A stretch of DNA of 63,690 bases, counting the filler, from Pelomyxa schiedti (taxonomy: Eukaryota > Protista > Evosea), in assembly GCA_020536535.1 (NCBI GenBank). It is 11 parts of 11 records of this genome, joined end to end, with 100 filler letters (N's around TTAATTAATTAA, not from the genome) between each part and the next. Parts side by side here need not be neighbours in the genome. Positions count along the whole stretch, not along the records: positions 26,956 to 34,194 come from JAHLWZ010001367.1; 10 more parts are not named here. One strand, 5' to 3'. This document shows, one piece after another, positions 4,972 to 34,316 of the stretch (the first letter of the stretch is position 1; the number at the start of each line of letters is the position of its first letter). The position numbers and the translations under genes are program-made. The notes beneath the pieces are model-generated. The model searched no databases, was not told the DNA's origin, and was given only the letters and a program-made list of their open reading frames with translations.

Positions 4972-6271
4972 TTAGGTGCTATAAAACCGGCTTGTGTGAG
5001 AAAGATTATTACCACACACGGGCCGGGGAGTGAGGTCATCACCCAGACCAAGTTGTCCAAAGTTATTGGACCCCCAGCTCAGAACACTCCAATCCGCTGC
5101 CAAGTCAGAGTCAGCCAACAGTTAAAAAGCCGAATTTAAATACATACATGCTACAGCCACCGAGTGGAAGGCACCGCAACTTATGGACTTGATCTTCTTG
5201 CTGAATTCCACTTTCATGAGGATCGGACTTGACCGGGAAACATAATCACCCAGTCCAAGTTGCCCAAGTTCATTTTCTCCCCAACAGAAGATATCGGAGT
5301 CCTTTCCTGCTGATTTGTGTAAAAAAAAATGGGGGAAAAAGTCATACACCAGAAGTGATGCTTGGCCGCAGGACCACCAGATGTTAAGGAAGGTTTTAAT
5401 GTTACATGCACCGGAGAACATTGTAGAGGTACCCATGGGCCGTGGTCGATTAAAAACCTCCCTGAGACAGCTATCCACAGACTTCTTTCGGCAGATGTGT
5501 GCTTTGTCTTGTGGGACAATATGAGACAAACTGCGGGAATCGAGGCGTCAATGTGGGCTTTTAGTATGCGCTCGGGAAATGTTTTAACTTTCCACTATAT
5601 TTCTCCACAAACCCCTGGGTGTCACCTGCAAAGAGCTCTCAGGGCATCCTCTTTTCGACACCGTACAGTGAGTTGGTGCGCAGAGAGTGATTGTAGTGGG
5701 TTACCTCTATTGGGATTCTAAATTCTGGTGTAGATTTCAGCAAGGACTCTTCAAGCACCTCCATAGATTCATGGAAGCCAATCCTACACTTGGCCAAGTG
5801 TGGCCGCGGAATGATTTCCACGGTTCCGGCGGAAGGTATCAGTGTAGACCCACGGGCCGGCGACGTTATTGACCTGGTAAACACCCGGTCAGTACTGTGC
5901 CGAGGCCTTTTTGGATCGCTACGCGGTATGGTATGCACATGCCAATCAGAAGCAGGGAAAACACCCCACCATCACCACCAACATCGACCTGGCGCTGTTG
6001 GTACCCCTGTTGGTGTTGTTGTTGTCGTTGTTGTTGTGGCTGTGGTTGCGGTGGGTATGGCGATGTCGCCGTGGCGACTGGTGGTGGTGGTGGTCGTGGT
6101 CGACGTTGTGGGGCGGGGGTGGGTCACCGGGCTCGTGGTCGTCGTCGTCGTCGCCGGCGGTGGTGGTGCCTCGTGGGCGTGGCCTCTTGACACCAGCGGT
6201 GGTTGTGGATTGCTGTTGTGGTTGTTGCTGTCGTTGCTGGAGCTGCGTGTTGTGGTGCTGGTGGCCCCCAC
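4972..6271 (-). CDS. Second, apparently truncated RCC1-repeat gene with low-complexity N-terminus
   Basis: The RCC1 exon at 5101-5308 is near-identical to 929-1136. It is followed by the exon DWSVLSWGSNNFGQLGLGDD and then a stop at 4972-4974. Upstream exons and a poly-T/Q region extend to ~6271 (start uncertain). Confidence 0.55.
5101..5308. repeat. 208-bp direct duplicate of 929-1136
   Basis: Direct comparison shows 3 substitutions in 208 bp. Confidence 0.95.
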
Positions 6272-6408: not shown

Positions 6409-7692
6409 TCACCAGACGCGAGAGGAGCGAGGAACAAAAGCAGCAAAGGAGCAACCAGGGAGGAGGAACTCAACAGTGGCAACACTCTTCATGTCTGACG
6501 ATGCATCAATCACGTGCAGTTTCTTCTTGTCGTCACTCACTTTCAGAAAGAACCCAAGGCCAATCATGAAGAAATCCATATGGGGAACTTGGATGCAGGA
6601 AATTGCGTTGTGGAGGTTGTTGCAATCCCAGACCAGAACTTGGGTCTTTTGTATCACACAGAACAAGGACTCACTCAGTTGAGACAATCCTCGGGCTCCT
6701 CTGTTTGGAATTGAGGTCTCAATTGTTTCTTGGGCACCACTTGGCTCCACTGCATAGATGGGACACTGACGGGGACGGGGAGAAAACGAAGCAATGAAAA
6801 TGGCTTGGCCGTTGCTTTTTCTCATTGGCAGAAGACATCTGATCCTTGAACCGGGGGAACTGGACATCCACTTGATTGAGGTCATCTTGAGGGTTTTTGT
6901 TGCCCAGGATGCAGCCAAATCAATGATCCAAAGTGTGAGCTCGTATTTGAAAATGTCAGTCAACGCTTCACCAGCAGGGTCGTAGAGCAGCTGAAAGGCT
7001 TCATTCTCAACAAACTTATTGAGGCCGACAAAGCCACAGACCATTTCATGAGGGAACGGGAAGACATGGTCAGCAACAGCGGCACCCCGTTGTGTCGGCA
7101 GACTCCCCAAGATGATTCTGCTTTCCCGTGTGCGTTTACCACTGCAACAAGCCACGAACCACTTGCTGTTGACGCAACACCAGTTGTCTCCAGAGAGGTA
7201 CATTGAGTCATCAAGTTTCTCAGCATACACCAGCGTGTCAATTCCCATAAGTTCATCCCTCAAGCGCAGCTCACGGCGCGACACCCATTTTACTCCCCGA
7301 GCAACCCCCAAGTTCCAGCGAAACTGTGCCTCCATCACAACCAACTCATGAGTGATTCCCATAAGCAGCATCGAGATGCCGATTCCCCAAACACAAGTCC
7401 TCTTGATTGGCTGCCCTGTTCGGCTCCTTGACACTTTGCTCTCAATTGCAAACATCCTCACACAGCCCATCACCCAGTCGTCCCATAATCGCCTCACCGC
7501 TTGCCAAGTAAGCCTCACTGCGCCCTTCCTCCCAGATCTCACTCCGCAGCAACGAGGGTGCGTGGCCAGCAGCAGCGCGGCAACTTGGTCGCGTGCGCGT
7601 ATCCCTGCCAAGTTGGGTGTGCCCTGCCACGGCATCGCCTCTTGTGATTTCCTTGATCTCTTTGGTGGTGGTCCCCACACAAGCTCACTCAT
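6409..7692 (-). CDS. Orphan expanded-family protein (ARDQ...HPRCCG motif), copy 2
   Basis: Intronless ORF starting MSELVWGPPP; paralog of 3222..4502. Confidence 0.85.
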   Translation of the reverse strand: MSELVWGPPPKRSRKSQEAMPWQGTPNLAGIRARDQVAALLLATHPRCCGVRSGRKGAVRLTWQAVRRLWDDWVMGCVRMFAIESKVSRSRTGQPIKRTCVWGIGISMLLMGITHELVVMEAQFRWNLGVARGVKWVSRRELRLRDELMGIDTLVYAEKLDDSMYLSGDNWCCVNSKWFVACCSGKRTRESRIILGSLPTQRGAAVADHVFPFPHEMVCGFVGLNKFVENEAFQLLYDPAGEALTDIFKYELTLWIIDLAASWATKTLKMTSIKWMSSSPGSRIRCLLPMRKSNGQAIFIASFSPRPRQCPIYAVEPSGAQETIETSIPNRGARGLSQLSESLFCVIQKTQVLVWDCNNLHNAISCIQVPHMDFFMIGLGFFLKVSDDKKKLHVIDASSDMKSVATVEFLLPGCSFAAFVPRSSRVW

Positions 7693-26855: not shown

Positions 26856-26955
26856 NNNNNNNNNNNNNNNNNNNNNNNNNNNNNNNNNNNNNNNNNNNNT
26901 TAATTAATTAANNNNNNNNNNNNNNNNNNNNNNNNNNNNNNNNNNNNNNNNNNNN

Positions 26956-27089
26956 GCGACGCCGTTGCTGCCCTCGAGGTAGCAGTTGGCGAGGTCGTAC
27001 ATCGCGTCGGCGTTGCCTGAGCGGACCTGCTCGATGAGCGAACCAATGTAACTCACGTCGTCCTTGTATGCAGTCGTGGTGTCGTCCAT
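26956..27089 (-). CDS. Sel1-repeat protein, N-terminal fragment (contig end)
   Basis: MDDTTTAYKDD...VRSGNADAMYDLANCYLEGSNGV matches the Sel1 consensus. Confidence 0.75.
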
Positions 27090-27488
27090 CAGAGGGAAAA
27101 TTCGGCAGAAGTGATTTTCCTGAAAAGATGGCGGACAGGTGTGTTGGTTGTTGTGGTGACTTAAGACAATGCCACCACAAGCAGGCTTTTGCCTGGTAGT
27201 CAGGCTTTTCAAAATAAAAAGAATCAGTGTTTTTTTCCTTTTTTGGTGGGTTTTCCTTTGATTTGGGGGGCAGGACAGGACTTTGGTGACCCCTCTTTGG
27301 CAGTGGTTGTTTTCCTTTTCCACCAGGCTTTTCCTGTGGAGCTTTAGATCGCTTATGGGCTGCCACTTGGGTGGGAGAGTCTGATTCACTGTCACTTGCT
27401 TCTTGCCCACCAGATGAGTCAGAAGAATGCTTAGGCGCTCTGGGGGAGCTATCTTGGTCTGACTCTGAAGAGGACTGATGACCTGTGA

Positions 27489-30400
27489 TTAATGATTTAA
27501 AATCAAAATGCCAGATGAAGTTTTACCTTGGCATTCAGCACTATTTGATGCACACTCTTCATCCATGGGTTCATGTGGTGTTCGTGTCATGAATGCTGAA
27601 GTACTTGTTGGAGTGCTCTCAGGAGGTACAAGAGTTGCTAATATCTCTTGTGGGACGCTTGACTGGGATGAAGGCCGATCAGCTTGAGAGGTTGTGGGAG
27701 TTGGGACAAAGGCTGGGGTGTCAGTAAGAAGTAATTGTACTTGAGGAATTGGAAGACTGGAAGCAGGTGGCTCGGAGCCAGCTTTTTCAGTTTCCCCATC
27801 AGTGGCATCCTCAATCTGGGTCACTTCAGTGACTGAAGTTTGAGAAGCTGCATGTGTAGATTCCTCCTCAGGGGGTGTGCTGTAGGTCAAGCTTGGTACT
27901 GTTGTGGGTGCTCCAGTCAAAAGCTGCTGATGTTGCAACTGTTGCCGTGTCTGTTGAGCCTCTGCTCGAGCCTGTTCACGATTCTGAGCAATAGTGTTTC
28001 TTTCATGCTCTGCAATTGTAGAAACGGAACCCATCAGTCTGAACCAAGTGCTGTGCGACTGAATGTATCTTTTCCAGCAGTGAAGGTGGACCTGGTTACA
28101 TGTTTAACGGGGAACAACTTCCAGTTATCAGACCTCGTGAATCAATGTTTGTCTCAGGTACATCCTCTGATCAGCAGCCAAGGAGGTGTCAATTCCCAAA
28201 TAGCTGATGTTGTCTTGGAGAGCCAGAGCACACAAATTAAAACCAGAATCAAAACCAAGCTGAAGGATGTTGGAGCTGTCTCCAAGAACCAGATTTAATT
28301 TGGAGAGTAGATGAATCCATGAGTTGACAGACAACCTCAGCATTGGTGGCACTCTTGAATGCAAGTAATGTCCCATTCTCACATCCACTTCCACTTGCAT
28401 AGTGTTTGCTTGGAAATATTCATGGATGTGGAAGTTCTTCTCAAAGCCGGGATTACAATAGAATTGAACAATGGCAACTCTTCCCTTGGCTTTTTTGAGG
28501 TGAGACTCTGAGCGGGTCATGATGCCATGGCTCGCTGATGCAATGAGAATGATATTTTCATGTAGAAGTTGCAGTCCAAGGTTGTGGAACCATAGACTTT
28601 TTCCAAGTCTTCTGGAAGCACAATCATCACAAACAGACCTGCGTAAAGCCATTAGAAATGTGAACAAAACCAAGTAGTGTGTACATGAATTTGTGGTCAA
28701 TTGATCCAAGAGACCACTTCCAGTGATATTCTGCCCATGAATGGATGGAGACAAGAAGCAAATATTTGCAAGGTTCTTCTCTTTCTGTACAATGGTAGGT
28801 AGGTGCTTGAGATGACATTCTTCCAGAGTAAAAACGCAGGTTGTTAAAAAATTATCCAAAGAAGCAAGCCCCTCAGAATAGCATTGCTAATAGATGAGTA
28901 AGTACACAAAGAGCAACAGAAGTTTTACCTCCCCATAGGCAATTAAGTTGTAGTTCCATAATCTTCCCTTCTCCTGATCTTCCCGGTTTTTCCCCTAGTT
29001 CCTTCAGACTTCTTGGCAAAGGAAAGAGCAGTACCTGTGTAACCGCTTGAATGAGAGGCAGAACTTTTGATTCATCTCTGACTGCGCCATCATACACAGC
29101 ATATCCAACAATACCTAGTTGCCGATGTGTGGGTAGGCCAGGCACGCCAGTGCGCATATCAGCATCAAGAAGTCCAGCAGCCATTACTTTATCCAAAAAG
29201 GAAACCTGCTCTCCTTCGTGGTCTCTTCCGTTTTGTGCAAGTTCTTTAGCCCTTTTTTGCAGGGATGCCCCCTCACTGACCCGAGATTCAAGAGGCTCAA
29301 GAGTCTCCCGTGCCTTTGAGGTTGTGACTTGCCCATTCTGAGCACAAATCCAGCTGAAAGGTATGTCAGTCATGAAAGCTAAACTTGGGAGGAACAAACT
29401 TGAGGTATGCCACAATCAGTTCCCATGGAAGAGCCCACACTTTTTGAGAAAAGTATGTCTCCTGTGAAAAGTTGTGTAGAGAGAGAGATTTGTCAGCCTG
29501 GGTGGTGTTGAACCATTGCTTAAGTGGTTCAATCAATCCTGAAGAATGTTGCAGCTTTATGACAGTAATTGCATGGCGGATGTTATTGCTTTTCCACCAG
29601 TGGTCTGTTGAGTGCTGGACATTGAGTTAGTACAATGTGGGTGGGAGTTCTGGTGTACATTGAGAGCCTCAAGTTCAATGGCAACACTTTCCACAGTTGG
29701 GGCTGATTTTGCAGCCCGCTTCTGCCCCAGTACATCTGGTGCTTTGTCCATCACATCCATAAAACACTTGAGGTTCCGCTCTGGGAATGAGTACTGCAAC
29801 ATATTCCTTGTAACAGACTGCTTCATTTGATTTTGCCATCATCAGCGGTGCTGTGCCCTTGCTGCAACGCAGAGTAAGGTAAGGCCATAACAGTGACAAA
29901 TTCGGGAATTGTTCTGAAAGGGGTTATAAGAAAAAACGTGGGAATTGTGCAAGTGCACTTACTGGATCATTTGTGTACTGTGAACATCAGCTCTGGCATT
30001 TCTGTCAACTTCCTCAAGCTTGGCACGGAGAGACTGCAGCACAAGTGTTTGGCGACTTTCAACTGCTGGAAGACTCTGTGAGACCAAATGCAAAGTTGCT
30101 GCTGTTGAAACAGCCGGAAGTAAAGATGAAGATGTAGTTGCGGAGCTGGGGCATTGGGTTTGGGACCATTGTGCATTGGCACTGTGGATAGCATCTAGCA
30201 ATGCTTTCTCTGCCACAGAGAGACAATCTGGGTGCGCCATTCGCAGATTTGCTTGGAAATGGGAGAGGTTTGGGTGAGCCAATTGCATTTTGCCACCCAC
30301 AGTTTCAAAGCTTACCGGCGGCACCGCCAGTAAGATCAACTGGGGATCACACACACAAAAAAATAAAAGTGACATGTAAATTGCCAAAGTGCTTTACCGG

Positions 30401-31059
30401 CGGCGCCGCCAGTAAGGGTTGTGATTTGGCACCAAATAATCAAAACACACGGAAAACGTACCTCCAGCATGACACCGAGAGATGCCATCATACACACCCT
30501 CGATGTCGGTCGCTGTGAGCACGATGGGCACATAACCGATTCGAGCATCTTGCCAGATCTGAGGGCTGATTCCCTCGAGGCACCGACTTTCCTGACGGAG
30601 TTTAACCCAGATGGCCGAGTCGTTACACCACCCCACATGCAGAATGTCCCTCTCCCGATCTTTTATTCTGCCCACATCCAGGTCTCTGTCAAAATTGCGG
30701 AAAACTGTGGTTTTTTAGCAATACTGGGGGGCAGTATGGTGAGTGAGGCACTATGTTGTGTGTTTATGCCACCCGCAGATGAGCTGTGTGGGGAGACATG
30801 GTTGTTGTTTTGTGTGTTGTTGTTGGCACATCAAAGGAGTCACATATCGTTTTGTGGGTGTACCTGTGGCCATTTCCACCAGCCGAATAGTGCCGTAAAA
30901 TACTGAGGAGCCAACGTTGTCCATCTCAGTCAATGTGGCATCGTGAAAATACTTTAAGCTTATCCGGGCCATTTCCTCAGCTGCCATCACCTCGACTTTG
31001 TGCTTCAAACTATCTTTAGCAGTTTGTACTGTCGTTTTTGTCACTTCTTTCCTAGCCAT
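27489..31059 (-). pseudogene. Intron-containing, partly frameshifted gene with a ParB/Srx-like N-terminal domain and beta-class amino-DNA-methyltransferase-like C-terminal motifs
   Basis: Exon 30462-30704 reads FRNFDRDLDVGRIKDRERDILHVGW...IGYVPIVL...VYDGISRCHA, then LSVAEKALLDAIHSAN. ORF 28128..28859 has NICFLSPS and PMLRLSVNSWIHLL...GDSSNILQLGFDSGFNLCALALQDNISYLGID. An in-frame stop and frame switches occur around 29.4-29.85 kb. Confidence 0.5.
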
Positions 31060-31411
31060 TAATGCTTAACAACAGAAAGAAAGTGCGACTGTACATACAG
31101 GTCTGACATCTCCTTCTCAGTACGCTTGATCTTGCTTGAGCGCTCTCCCTGGGGCACCTCCTTGTCCAAAGAGAGCCTTGGTTTAGTATTCTTCATTTAT
31201 GTTTGCGTTGTATTTCATTTTGCTTTGGTTTTTCTGCTTGGCTTTTAAAGCAAACATTAAAAGCGGTTTTCTGTGTGGTGAATGTTGTGGACATAGAAAC
31301 CACTTAGCACTTTTCAGACCCCACCCTTTTTCTGACCTGTACTTTCTACTTTTAGATTAACATCATTTCAGGGACATTGAAAGAGATCTGTATGGAAAGC
31401 CACATCAGGCA

Positions 31412-33732
31412 ATGCAATGTTGCAGATCCACCTACCAGGTAGATCTACCTGCTTTTTACTGTTACTTTTTAAAAAGTACTTTAAGAGGGGTACCACCCAT
31501 GTCAGCAACGTGCGCCACTCAAGCTGTAACACAGTGCTGCCTGAGGAATTGTGTGACAGCTTTTACTCCTGCTGAAATTGAACAACACCGAGTGAAACTA
31601 CACTCTAAAATAAAAGCTGATCAAGATACATACTTGGTGGAAAAACTGCAAAGGTTTCACTCACACATGTACATATTCAAAGGTGTTTCTGTTATCCCCT
31701 CACTCTCATTTCCATTACGATCTCTATTTTCAATTTCCCTTCGTTTTGACACCAGTCAACACAGGGAGGACTGTGTGCCGAGCAGCATTTTGCTTTTTTT
31801 ATGGAATTGGACATGAGCGCCTTACCAATCTCCATGCATACATAGATGGGTCCAGGTAAAAAACAGGCGAGAGTGAGGGGGAGGGTAGTGTTTGTCCAAA
31901 TTTGTTAACTTTGGGAATCGAGGGGCTCTTGATCTCCACTGTTCCAGAGAATCTGCAAAGCAGAGGAGTGCCATAGAGTGGATAACTTCCTGTGTTATTG
32001 AGTCTCATCTATGTGAACCATTGGTTGGGGAAAGGGCTGTGGATCGGGATGGTAACCAAAGGCTTATCTTACCTGCCTCTGAGACTCTCTCTGATTTATA
32101 TACAAGAATGATAGATGATTTGATGGCAGACGATGTTGGAGCTGAGAAAGTTATTATTATTTAAGCTTATAATAATGTAAAACAACACTGACAAGATCTG
32201 GCAGATCCCAAGCATGCGGACCTTCTACAGGGTTCTAGAGAAAAAGTTTCCCTTCATATTGCATGAGTGCATTACCACCCAGACTCGTTGCACTATTTGT
32301 GACAAGTTACGACGCTCAAAGGCTGATGCACTACGTGGGGGTGATCCGGCTCTAACTTCTAGTCTTATTGGGACCATTGATGCACACACCAAGCTTCACC
32401 TTGGTGAGCGCCAGTACCAAGACCATAAATATGCCAAGGCAAGAAACTTCCCAGCTGAATTGGGTGCTGTGTGCATGGATGCTAAGCAACATCTCGTTCT
32501 GCCTCATTTTCGGAGGTGTACGACTCTCTCAGGGTTGTGCAAAGTATGCTTTGCACATCATGGGCATCCAGGATTTGGGGAACCAAGAAAGGGCTATTTA
32601 CTTATACCCTGATATATGGAACAACAACATAGTTCTTTCAATTCTCCATCAGAATCTTACCAGGATGTTTTTACCCATCCCCCTTGCCAGGCAGACTGGC
32701 ACAGCCAAGAACTGCTTTCGATACAAGAAACTGTACCTGACCTTTGACAACGCCGCTGTAAATAAATGCATGACCTCATTCTTATACTGTGGAATGCTGG
32801 TGGCTAAGCAGTGGGTAAGATCCATTGATTTTTGATTGGCATGCTTCTTCCTGGACATGGACATGGTCTGCAGGACCAATTATTCAGCTCCCTTCACTAT
32901 CCCCTGCATGCACAGGATGCACTTACTGTTCCTGCTTTTCTTGAGTTGTGCAGATGTGCCTACCAGCGAAAGCCAGTCTCTCTTTTTGTGTTGGATGTGG
33001 TCTGGGATTGGCAGGATTATTTCTCTCCATGCTTGCACACTGTGAAGTGGCAACACATTGAGGATTGCTTTGGGTTCAAGATCTCAGTAGGTGTTCCTAC
33101 AGGTGCAGATGCCGCACATGAATCTGTTGTAATACAGTCAAGGCAGTTTAATTCCAAAGAAATGTGGTCTGACCACAAAGCGGACCTCTTTCCCCTTGGG
33201 ATTCCCAGTGGCATTCCCTATGTTACCCACCAGATTTTTCTGTCTTCCAGTGTAAAGAGATATCTGAGATCATCAAGATCCTTCCTCCTTCAGAATCTGC
33301 CAGAAGTTGGTGGAAGTGCTTGATTGATCACCCTGCTGCTGTTTTTCCTGGCCCCAATCCTGCTAGTTCCTTGGTATGTGAGTGATTTCGCTTCTTTGTA
33401 TAACTGAGTGATTTTTTGCTGCACAGTGGGATGAGAACAACTTTTGGAGCACAACTGGATTTATTCCTTGCAATGCAAGGCTCACTGTGCCTCCAATTAC
33501 CACACAGGCATCTGTTTTTTTGAGTAACCTTCATAAATTACAATCACATGAGGATCTGAGGGCCTTCAGCAAACAGGAAATTGTGGTGCTGTTTGATGGT
33601 GGTGTGGCAGAGGTGCACAAGGTGAGAATGCACAAAGGAAAAACCTATTTGCTTGTCAACTTTTTGCAGCCTGCAGTATCACAAGGCATGTCTGTCACCT
33701 TAACACTCCTTACTTCTCCTAGTGACACATGA
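31412..33732 (+). mobile_element. Decayed DDD-type DNA transposase gene (Sola-like, tentative) with introns and frameshifts
   Basis: CC..C...; VCRAAFCFFYGIG; LPASETLSDLY; FYRVLEKKFPFI...RCTICD; H...H; CMDAKQHLVLP; LYLTFDNAAVNK; LLPGHGHGLQDQLFSSL. Frameshifts at ~32520 and ~32830 (T5 instead of T6). Confidence 0.8.
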
Positions 33733-33874
33733 AACAATCTACACTTCCATGAACCCTCCTCATTTTTTCTATGTTGCAGCCAGGTAAAAACATTCTCTTC
33801 TCTTAAGAATAAGAGATGTAACTGCACTTTTTAGCTATGTCCTTTGGCATGCTAAGAAGAAGGATGCCTTGACA

Positions 33875-34035
33875 CAAAGAAACACCTTGAAACAGGTTCC
33901 TCACAATTATATTGCCCGTTGCTGCTGTAATTCACTTCCCCCTGTGCCACACTATGAAGAAAATGTGTGGCCGGACTGCCTTTCCTCCTGAGGGTGTTTT
34001 TTCGGTTTCTCCACACAATTCCTAAAACAACCCCT
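33875..34035. repeat. Dispersed repeat modules shared with 57323-57530
   Basis: ~33878-33930 matches ~57470-57525 directly; ~33962-34035 matches ~57323-57400 as reverse complement. Confidence 0.85.
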
Positions 34036-34316
34036 GTGTGCTTCTGTGGGGATGTGCAGTTCAGTGTGTGACAAGAAAGCAGGGAACAAGCACGAGATCA
34101 AGAAAGGATTCTATTATTTGTTCTGTTTGTTGTTTGTTTTGATTTATGAGGTTTGGGTCGCGATTCTAAGGTCGGAGTGTGTCGGGCTTATAAGNNNNNN
34201 NNNNNNNNNNNNNNNNNNNNNNNNNNNNNNNNNNNNNNTTAATTAATTAANNNNNNNNNNNNNNNNNNNNNNNNNNNNNNNNNNNNNNNNNNNNGTGGAT
34301 TTTAAGGTATTTCCGG

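Follow-up and report, generated by a model that had tools for sequence, protein, structure and literature searches.

A putative TTAA-inserting DNA transposon of Pelomyxa schiedti with a DUF7869 transposase and a second, lineage-restricted gene

A stretch of 63,690 nucleotides of DNA from Pelomyxa schiedti (assembly GCA_020536535.1) was analysed. This stretch, made up of 11 parts joined by filler, is referred to as the window, and positions are counted along it unless another contig is named. One piece of it (26956–34194, from JAHLWZ010001367.1) is best explained, with moderate confidence, as a decaying, non-autonomous copy of a multi-copy family of cut-and-paste DNA transposons bounded by terminal inverted repeats (TIRs). 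The full element would be about 7 kb in length, with TIRs of 50–65 bp, and would insert at TTAA and duplicate that site. Transcription of its two genes would lead outward from a centre of about 440 bp; one would code for a transposase with a DUF7869 domain (plus strand) and the other for a protein of about 1,050 amino acids, ORF2 (minus strand, the cargo gene). A first-pass annotation of the sequence had seen here a DNA transposon carrying a prokaryote-type cargo gene, a ParB/Srx domain joined to a beta-class amino-methyltransferase. Its transposon is borne out by the TIRs, the TTAA target duplication, the number of copies and a transposase of the DDE/D type that matches DUF7869; the cargo gene is taken up below.

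The G+C content of the piece is 39–50% in 400-nt windows, and its many short open reading frames (ORFs), which change from frame to frame, are typical of a eukaryote rich in short introns. Contigs with other copies diverge from the window exactly at 27161/27162 and at 27215. The sequence at 27161–27214 matches positions 6078–6130 of L001, a P. schiedti contig of the same assembly, and with respect to the element the two are oppositely oriented; what is the left end here is therefore, in inverted form, the right end of L001. A core, CAGGCTTTTGCC, is common to the TIRs of all three subfamilies (see below), including 27165–27214 of the window and the 65-nt TIRs of the L002 copy. The termini of the window, L001 and L003 copies abut TTAA, as do both ends of the L002 element, and at L004 the sequence is ATAA. 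Since the cargo gene runs to the TIR at 27165–27214 and coding similarity to the L002 transposase continues to at least 33982, the element limits proposed at first, 27489–33732, are too narrow on both sides. Several contigs from runs X2, X3 and X4 carry the terminal 50 bp and then unrelated internal sequence right after 27214/27215. These loose ends hint at internally deleted derivatives resembling miniature inverted-repeat transposable elements, or at further subfamilies.

Dispersed copies are present in the window and at four further loci (L001–L004), each on a different contig. Public runs with matching sequence come from one study and comprise two runs of one organism and two single-cell RNA-seq runs. 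In the DNA runs 196 and 121 contig fragments matched at 90–100% identity, so the family is multi-copy. Three subfamilies were distinguished, of which A includes the window copy, B is represented by L002, and the third is C. Positions 28726–33677 of the window match L001 10675–6139 with 91–98% identity, and the DUF7869 gene diverges from the cargo gene in both. The same head-to-head pair is found, roughly 50% diverged, in L002, a 7,665-bp contig that holds a complete element of 6,962 bp and so provides the intact copy for which a search had been suggested. Its TIRs (405–469 and 7302–7366) are 65 nt long, 89% complementary and 6,832 nt apart; TTAA flanks the element on both sides and the DNA beyond is unrelated. 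A remnant of the pair occurs in L003, an internally deleted copy in which a TIR and the N-terminal remnant of the transposase lie next to the cargo gene. The minus-strand gene is hence neither single-copy nor unlinked from the transposase, and the claim that the transposon carries a second, linked, intron-bearing gene holds for L001, L002 and, as a remnant, L003. L004 is cut by the contig end, and the TIR lies just beyond the end of its cargo gene. Near-complete copies were seen in A and B, and the C copies seen are deleted or ended by a contig end.

The cargo gene of L002 is open throughout and both L002 genes are open across the compared blocks, which for the transposase means those blocks and not an assembled complete reading frame. 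Spliced RNA contigs cover both genes, some of them identical to the window copy. Because the L002 genes are open across the compared blocks and transcripts are present, the family may still be active. In L001 the 3′ region of the transposase, equivalent to window position 33678 onward, is deleted, and about eight unmatched bases (6130–6140) connect the coding sequence with the right TIR; the L001 cargo gene has several small indels, and this copy breaks off at the point matching window position 28726. An annotated gene of 413 amino acids without Pfam hits (L003 685–1992) lies upstream of the deleted copy in L003.

Two ORFs of the plus-strand gene in the window match Pfam PF25273 (DUF7869) with E = 8e-8 and 3e-3, and an uninterrupted exon of 288 amino acids in L002 matches it with 2e-17. 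In Atlas the transposase has as its neighbours clusters of DUF7869 proteins found in arthropods, rotifers, cnidarians, molluscs and diatoms. For the first-ranked cluster the model, which represents the cluster and not the window protein, is structurally near the bacterial DDE_Tnp_ISAZ013 and DDE_3 transposases. The plus-strand product is thus a predicted RNase-H-like transposase of the DDE/D type. Its CMDAKQ, TFDNA and GHGHGLQD blocks are conserved between subfamilies whose transposases have diverged to 45–58% identity, and they suggest a D..D..D catalytic triad. By the mechanism proposed, the transposase would bind the TIRs, excise the element and reinsert it at TTAA.

An RNA contig joins 31436 to 31484, across a 47-nt intron (31437–31483) with GT..AG ends. 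The ATG at 31412, at first taken as the start of this gene, lies in the 5′ exon and is left by the intron in a frame other than that of the conserved coding sequence; the real start is therefore probably the ATG at 31499 (MSATCATQ..., in L002 MAATQGTS...). The region 31060–31498 between the two genes is presumably a bidirectional promoter. Frameshifts occur in the window transposase at about 32512, 32831 and 33224, inside blocks that are continuous in L002.

The structure of the cargo gene was modelled from its paralogue P0002, from the RNA joints 29963/29913 and 27527/27481 and from GT..AG boundaries. The resulting 11-exon model aligns with P0002 over its whole length, in three frame segments. 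These two joints support cargo introns 3 and 10, a further RNA joint lies at 27741/27662, and short GT..AG introns are present in both genes. L002 has its introns at the same positions; they are 41–50 nt long, except for one of about 210–221 nt. The picture of two diverging, intron-bearing genes therefore stands, with the minus-strand ATG at 31059 and introns backed by RNA joints, and the peptides quoted for the gene are present as written. Its first exons as originally drawn (31059–30864, 30704–30462 and 30251 onward) agree with the paralogue, but the mini-exon placed at 30339–30316 is absent from P0002 (CHAG|ANLRL). Intron 2, of about 210 nt, contains two copies of a near-perfect 23-nt palindrome, CTTACTGGCGGYGCCGCCGGTAAG, at 30312–30334 and 30394–30416, 82 nt apart. 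L001 lacks 13 nt of the first palindrome copy, and the L002 intron at this position is also long (221 nt), against 40–50 nt for all other introns. Within exon 10 an RNA contig skips 78 nt (27663–27740) in frame, with GT..AG on the minus strand, which suggests an alternatively spliced intron in the disordered Ser/Thr/Pro-rich tail.

The window cargo gene contains exactly two internal frameshifts, at about 29827 and about 28590, and lacks an in-frame stop ahead of the TIR. L002 stops at ...KKGRKT-TGA, and the stop site corresponds to 27215–27260; in the window copy an extra base near an A-run shifts this TGA out of frame. As the stop codon before the TIR is lost, the cargo frame reads through the TIR into the flank. 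Both genes are frameshifted and the copy is decaying, as had been recognised from the sequence. With at least five frameshifts neither protein can be encoded by the window copy, which is a pseudogene and for its mobility would depend on the proteins being provided in trans by an intact copy, L002 for example. Assembly error was considered as a source of the frameshifts and rejected, since an independent contig of run X1 matches exactly across 28590; the rejection is tempered by the fact that X1 may be the assembly's own data.

Relatives of ORF2 were searched for in several ways. The longest minus-strand ORF (28128–28859, 243 amino acids) had a sole match in a word-indexed protein search, the P. 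schiedti hypothetical protein P0001, which is encoded on contig L001. A phmmer search of the same ORF against 1.8 billion representative proteins gave five real relatives, four of them annotated P. schiedti proteins, including P0002 (754 amino acids, 50% identity), and the fifth on a Logan contig; no prokaryotic, phage or viral relative was among them. A sixth match, to a repeat protein of 2,804 amino acids (E = 6.5e-5), is probably due to chance. Metagenome scans with P0002 and with a degenerate DNA pattern for GFDSGFNLCAL gave no relatives. When the relatives of ORF2 were located on their contigs, all lay inside elements, in three subfamilies and in P. schiedti only.

ORF2 has three conserved domains: an N-terminal one, followed by coiled-coil and Ser/Thr-rich linkers, a middle one, and a C-terminal one of alpha/beta appearance. 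The protein closes with a long disordered tail, in which a lysine-rich stretch resembles a nuclear localization signal, and a nuclear protein is predicted. Between subfamilies A and B, compared over 638 codons, dN/dS is about 0.15, from a non-synonymous divergence (dN) of 0.37 and a synonymous divergence (dS) of about 2.5. The two subfamily A copies differ at 14 codons synonymously and at 32 non-synonymously, with 3.2% divergence in exons and 4.4% in introns, and changes within the group look nearly neutral. The low ratio between A and B and the near-neutral changes within A indicate that ORF2 has been kept by selection in the history of the family and decays after insertion. ORF2 may act as a nuclear accessory factor needed for propagation of the element, by analogy with other two-gene transposons, for instance in binding of TIRs or chromatin, in transpososome assembly or in regulation.

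Some points weigh against this account of the locus. The right TIR of the window copy is not reached, there being no inverted copy of 27165–27214 within 33678–34194, and the right end is thus unseen. The accessory role of ORF2 in transposition is argued by analogy. A conserved set of Rossmann-like motifs in ORF2 (hhhh-S-P-S-h-H, N-G-C-hhhh, G-F-D-S-G and Y-L-G-I-D), together with Atlas hits at 0.92, leaves room for a methyltransferase-derived domain.

The motifs behind the ParB and methyltransferase identities were compared among the subfamilies. YDGISRCHAG of subfamily A fits the DGxxRxxA spacing of ParB/Srx domains, and a helix ending in ...HSAN comes next. Subfamily B has YDRISRCHAG, with the glycine lost to arginine, and RRNLITL in place of the YVPIVL of subfamily A, so that neither the glycine of 'DG' nor the 'PIV' strand is conserved. 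Towards the C terminus, ICFLSPS precedes LQLGFDSGFNLCALAL..YLGIDTS, just after which the domain comes to its end, in a beta-class-like manner. GFDSGFN...YLGIDTS is conserved, with aspartate in place of the central glycine of motif I (FxGxG). Motif IV, (D/N/S)PP(Y/F/W), is absent; all three subfamilies have SPS[IL]H or TPSLH, with neither PP nor the aromatic residue.

Profile searches were carried out with the window pieces, P0002–P0005 and the L002 exons. Pfam (up to E = 10), PHROGs and NCBIfam gave no match to ParBc, Srx, N6_N4_Mtase or any other methyltransferase family. A PDB sequence search with profiles of the C-terminal region and of exon 2 gave nothing at E <= 10, and a word-indexed search with the ParB-like exon gave no candidates. 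For direct profile comparison, a beta-class methyltransferase profile of 21 sequences was built from E. coli YhdJ orthologues (68–100% identity) and 13 diverse phage and plasmid enzymes; four of its enzymes that were scanned by Pfam match PF01555 at 1e-39 to 1e-55. Against this profile the C-terminal alignment of ORF2 scored 19.7 in hhalign (P = 0.07), a value equalled or exceeded by 7 of 60 column-shuffled controls. The alignment lays GFDSGFN..YLGID on FxGSGTT..IGIE, and SPS is not placed on DPPY. The ParB profile consisted of four sequences (F SopB, the 652-amino-acid ParB-like protein of F, gp54 of Gordonia phage Hedwig and a Microcystis phage protein); a plasmid search for diverse ParB domains had near-identical F-type proteins among the matches listed (at least 5,000). 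Exon 2 compared with this profile gave P = 0.59, with the alignment falling outside the ParB N-terminal domain; the ParB-like domain is split by the 210-nt intron and its own alignment is two to three sequences deep.

The language-model matches of ORF2 in Atlas are class I S-adenosylmethionine (SAM) methyltransferase clusters (0.92, about 99 of 256 shared features), with a recognition value below the reliability threshold. Two AlphaFold2 runs on the C-terminal region, from alignments of 7–8 rows over the three subfamilies, gave mean predicted local distance difference test (pLDDT) values of 36.4 and 32.3; at such values (36 and 32) the models are unusable and comparison of folds is meaningless. 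The ParB and methyltransferase motif patterns are no stronger than chance in every profile test run. A methyltransferase-derived fold of ORF2 is a tentative possibility, its carrying a ParB domain is improbable, and an active ParB-methyltransferase is more doubtful still.

Among the other explanations, the one that survives best takes the C-terminal domain as a degenerate, catalytically dead module derived from a Rossmann methyltransferase, serving in binding or as a scaffold, with neither ParB domain nor DNA modification. The conserved series ADICFLSPSLHG..LLEQLT.NGCLFVMIS ... GFDSGFNLCAL..YLGIDTS speaks for it, as its first part, ADICFLSPSLHGQNF..LLEQLT.NGCLFVMIS, resembles by eye the beta4-alphaD-beta5 region of class I methyltransferases, and GFDSG, which is GxGxG-like, is conserved across subfamilies together with the YLGID after it. 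The class I feature matches in Atlas point the same way, the low-confidence AlphaFold2 secondary structure alternates strands and helices, and the DIRS1 methyltransferase domain, probably inactive, is a precedent (PMC4738411). The negative profile and hhalign results apply to this explanation alike, the AlphaFold2 models are unusable, and motifs so short could be chance; it is considered unlikely.

Less probable again is that ORF2 is a passenger, a host gene captured by the transposon and without a role in transposition. Capture of host fragments by DNA transposons is generally known, and no transposition-related domain was recognised in ORF2 with Pfam, PHROGs or NCBIfam. However, no copy of ORF2 was found outside an element, it is full-length with the same position and intron layout in A and B despite transposases at 45–58% identity, and the dN/dS of 0.15 also argues against a mere passenger.

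The original proposal, a ParB/Srx and beta-class N6A/N4C methyltransferase fusion of prokaryotic or phage origin, captured, intronised and marking the element's DNA now or formerly, can draw on the DGISRCHA and ICFLSPS patterns, the hhalign pairing, Atlas matches that are all class I SAM methyltransferases, and the existence of ParB-methyltransferase fusions or pairings and of transposon-borne methyltransferases (PMC4738411; bioRxiv 10.64898/2026.05.21.726589), but with no database profile match, hhalign results reached by 7 of 60 shuffles or falling outside the domain, an incomplete motif IV, 'DG' and 'PIV' changed in B and a sub-threshold Atlas value it is very unlikely. Its prokaryotic origin with later gain of introns is without evidence, as the ParB-methyltransferase identity is unsupported and no prokaryotic or phage relative was found among the 1.8 billion proteins. 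It is equally hard to credit ORF2 as a very diverged, circularly permuted (beta-type) Rossmann methyltransferase with a ParB/Srx-like domain, come from a phage or plasmid and kept to modify or read DNA at the element ends, which we regard as highly improbable.

Table 1. Features of the element copy and its flank in the window. Strand is given as + or -; a dot marks features without strand.
Feature	Position	Strand	Basis
Flanking host DNA, outside the element	26956..27160	-	similarity to other copies ends at 27161/27162
TTAA target site, one copy of the presumed target site duplication	27161..27164	.	adjoins terminus; same in L001, L003 and both sides of L002
Left TIR, about 50 bp	27165..27214	+	matches L001 6078-6130, inverted, at the transposase end there
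Cargo gene ORF2, about 1,050 amino acids, 11 exons	27215..31059	-	spliced model against P0002 (tblastn), L002 introns, RNA joints
Cargo exons 1-6	31059-30864, 30704-30462, 30251-29963, 29913-29659, 29614-29400, 29353-29035	-	
Cargo exons 7-11	28994-28929, 28886-28685, 28638-28134, 28091-27527, 27482-about 27215	-	
Exon 2, 'ParB/Srx-like' segment	30463..30702	-	62% identical to L002 3809-4051; no profile match
Exons 8-9, 'methyltransferase-like' segment	28134..28886	-	ICFLSPSIHG ... NSCLFVMI ... LQLGFDSGFNLCALAL ... YLGIDTS; conserved in three subfamilies
Cargo frameshift 1, exon 4	29824..29830 (about 29827)	-	...ADDGKIK then MKQSVTRNML; P0002 continuous (DDYNIAHFKQTVTRKLL)
Cargo frameshift 2, exon 9	28581..28600 (about 28590)	-	CLFVMIVLPEDLEKVYG in one frame, LGLQLLHENIILIAS in another; P0002 and P0004 continuous
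Divergent intergenic region, including transposase 5′ exon (to 31436) and 5′ intron (31437-31483)	31060..31498	.	gene starts and RNA joint 31436/31484
Putative transposase gene, DUF7869, D..D..D pattern	31499..33982	+	Pfam PF25273; tblastx blocks against L002; Atlas clusters
Transposase coding blocks	about 31499-31684, 31764-31856, 31943-32158, 32193-32540, 32515-32829, 32835-33221, 33227-33379, 33427-33546, 33818-33982	+	tblastx against L002
Remaining 3′ part of the element	33983..34194	.	piece ends before right TIR; last conserved block of L002 about 140 bp from TIR

Beyond the left end, the minus-strand flank at 26956–27100 contains the start of a host gene whose product begins MDDTTTAYKDDVSY... 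and has weak Sel1/TPR hints (AMYDLANCYLEGSNGV). The ORF at 26904–27410 on the minus strand likewise gives weak Sel1 and TPR hints in Pfam. The element lies about 60–70 bp upstream of the start codon of this Sel1/TPR-like gene.

The family appears to be an undescribed, recently active, TTAA-specific DNA transposon family of Archamoebae with a DUF7869 transposase. A literature search found no paper mentioning DUF7869 or PF25273 and none dealing with P. schiedti transposons in any detail; the DUF7869 group is widespread and uncharacterised in eukaryotes. L002, with its 65-bp TIRs, ORFs open across the compared blocks and transcripts, may be an active TTAA-inserting element that does not belong to piggyBac. 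In this family purifying selection also maintains a large second gene that is restricted to the lineage. Few conserved second ORFs are present in DNA transposons, and they are usually mechanistically telling, as with the Myb-like protein of Harbinger. Were ORF2 a methyltransferase, the element would join a short list of mobile elements with a DNA-modification module of their own, and a ParB-methyltransferase acting at the element ends would mean that a DNA transposon of an anaerobic amoeba brings its own epigenetic module with it. As the evidence stands, it is an ordinary transposable element whose accessory gene is an orphan.

Phage and plasmid proteins with a ParB N-terminal domain and a beta-class methyltransferase (PF02195 and PF01555) resemble ORF2 only in short motifs and in the order of a IV-like motif followed by a I-like one; statistically supported similarity is lacking, as is the (D/S/N)PP(Y/F/W) motif in ORF2. 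Methyltransferases of mobile elements are known from the DIRS1 domain (PMC4738411), from retrotransposon adenine methyltransferases (bioRxiv 10.64898/2026.05.21.726589) and from the N4CMT of bdelloids (PMC8885841). These are recognisable by sequence, unlike ORF2, and the element described here is a DNA transposon rather than a retrotransposon.

The classic TTAA-specific superfamilies are piggyBac and Kolobok (PMC9587614). Common to them and the P. schiedti element are a 4-bp target site duplication (TSD) with specificity for TTAA and cut-and-paste movement of a unit bounded by TIRs. The transposase pieces here match DUF7869 only in Pfam, and not the DDE_Tnp_1_7 family of piggyBac; no THAP domain was detected. 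The termini of piggyBac are CCC...GGG, unlike the GA/GG/GC... termini here, and the GC terminus of L002 differs from the 5′-RR of Kolobok.

The Sola superfamily, described by Bao, Jurka and Kapitonov in 2009, reportedly has a DDD transposase and a 4-bp TSD, and protists are among its hosts. The Sola-like character proposed at first may hold, as the present element agrees with this description in the length of the TSD (TTAA here) and in the D..D..D pattern. To our knowledge the Sola elements described have one gene each, whereas here a second, coding for about 1,050 amino acids, has been kept.

Two-gene DNA transposons are found in the PIF/Harbinger and CACTA superfamilies, which have a 3-bp TSD, and the second protein of Harbinger is Myb/SANT-like. 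Their transposase family, TSD and second protein differ from those described here, and nothing Myb/SANT-like was detected in the P. schiedti element. Like it, however, they combine a transposase with a second element-encoded protein kept by selection, and so may offer a functional analogy for ORF2.

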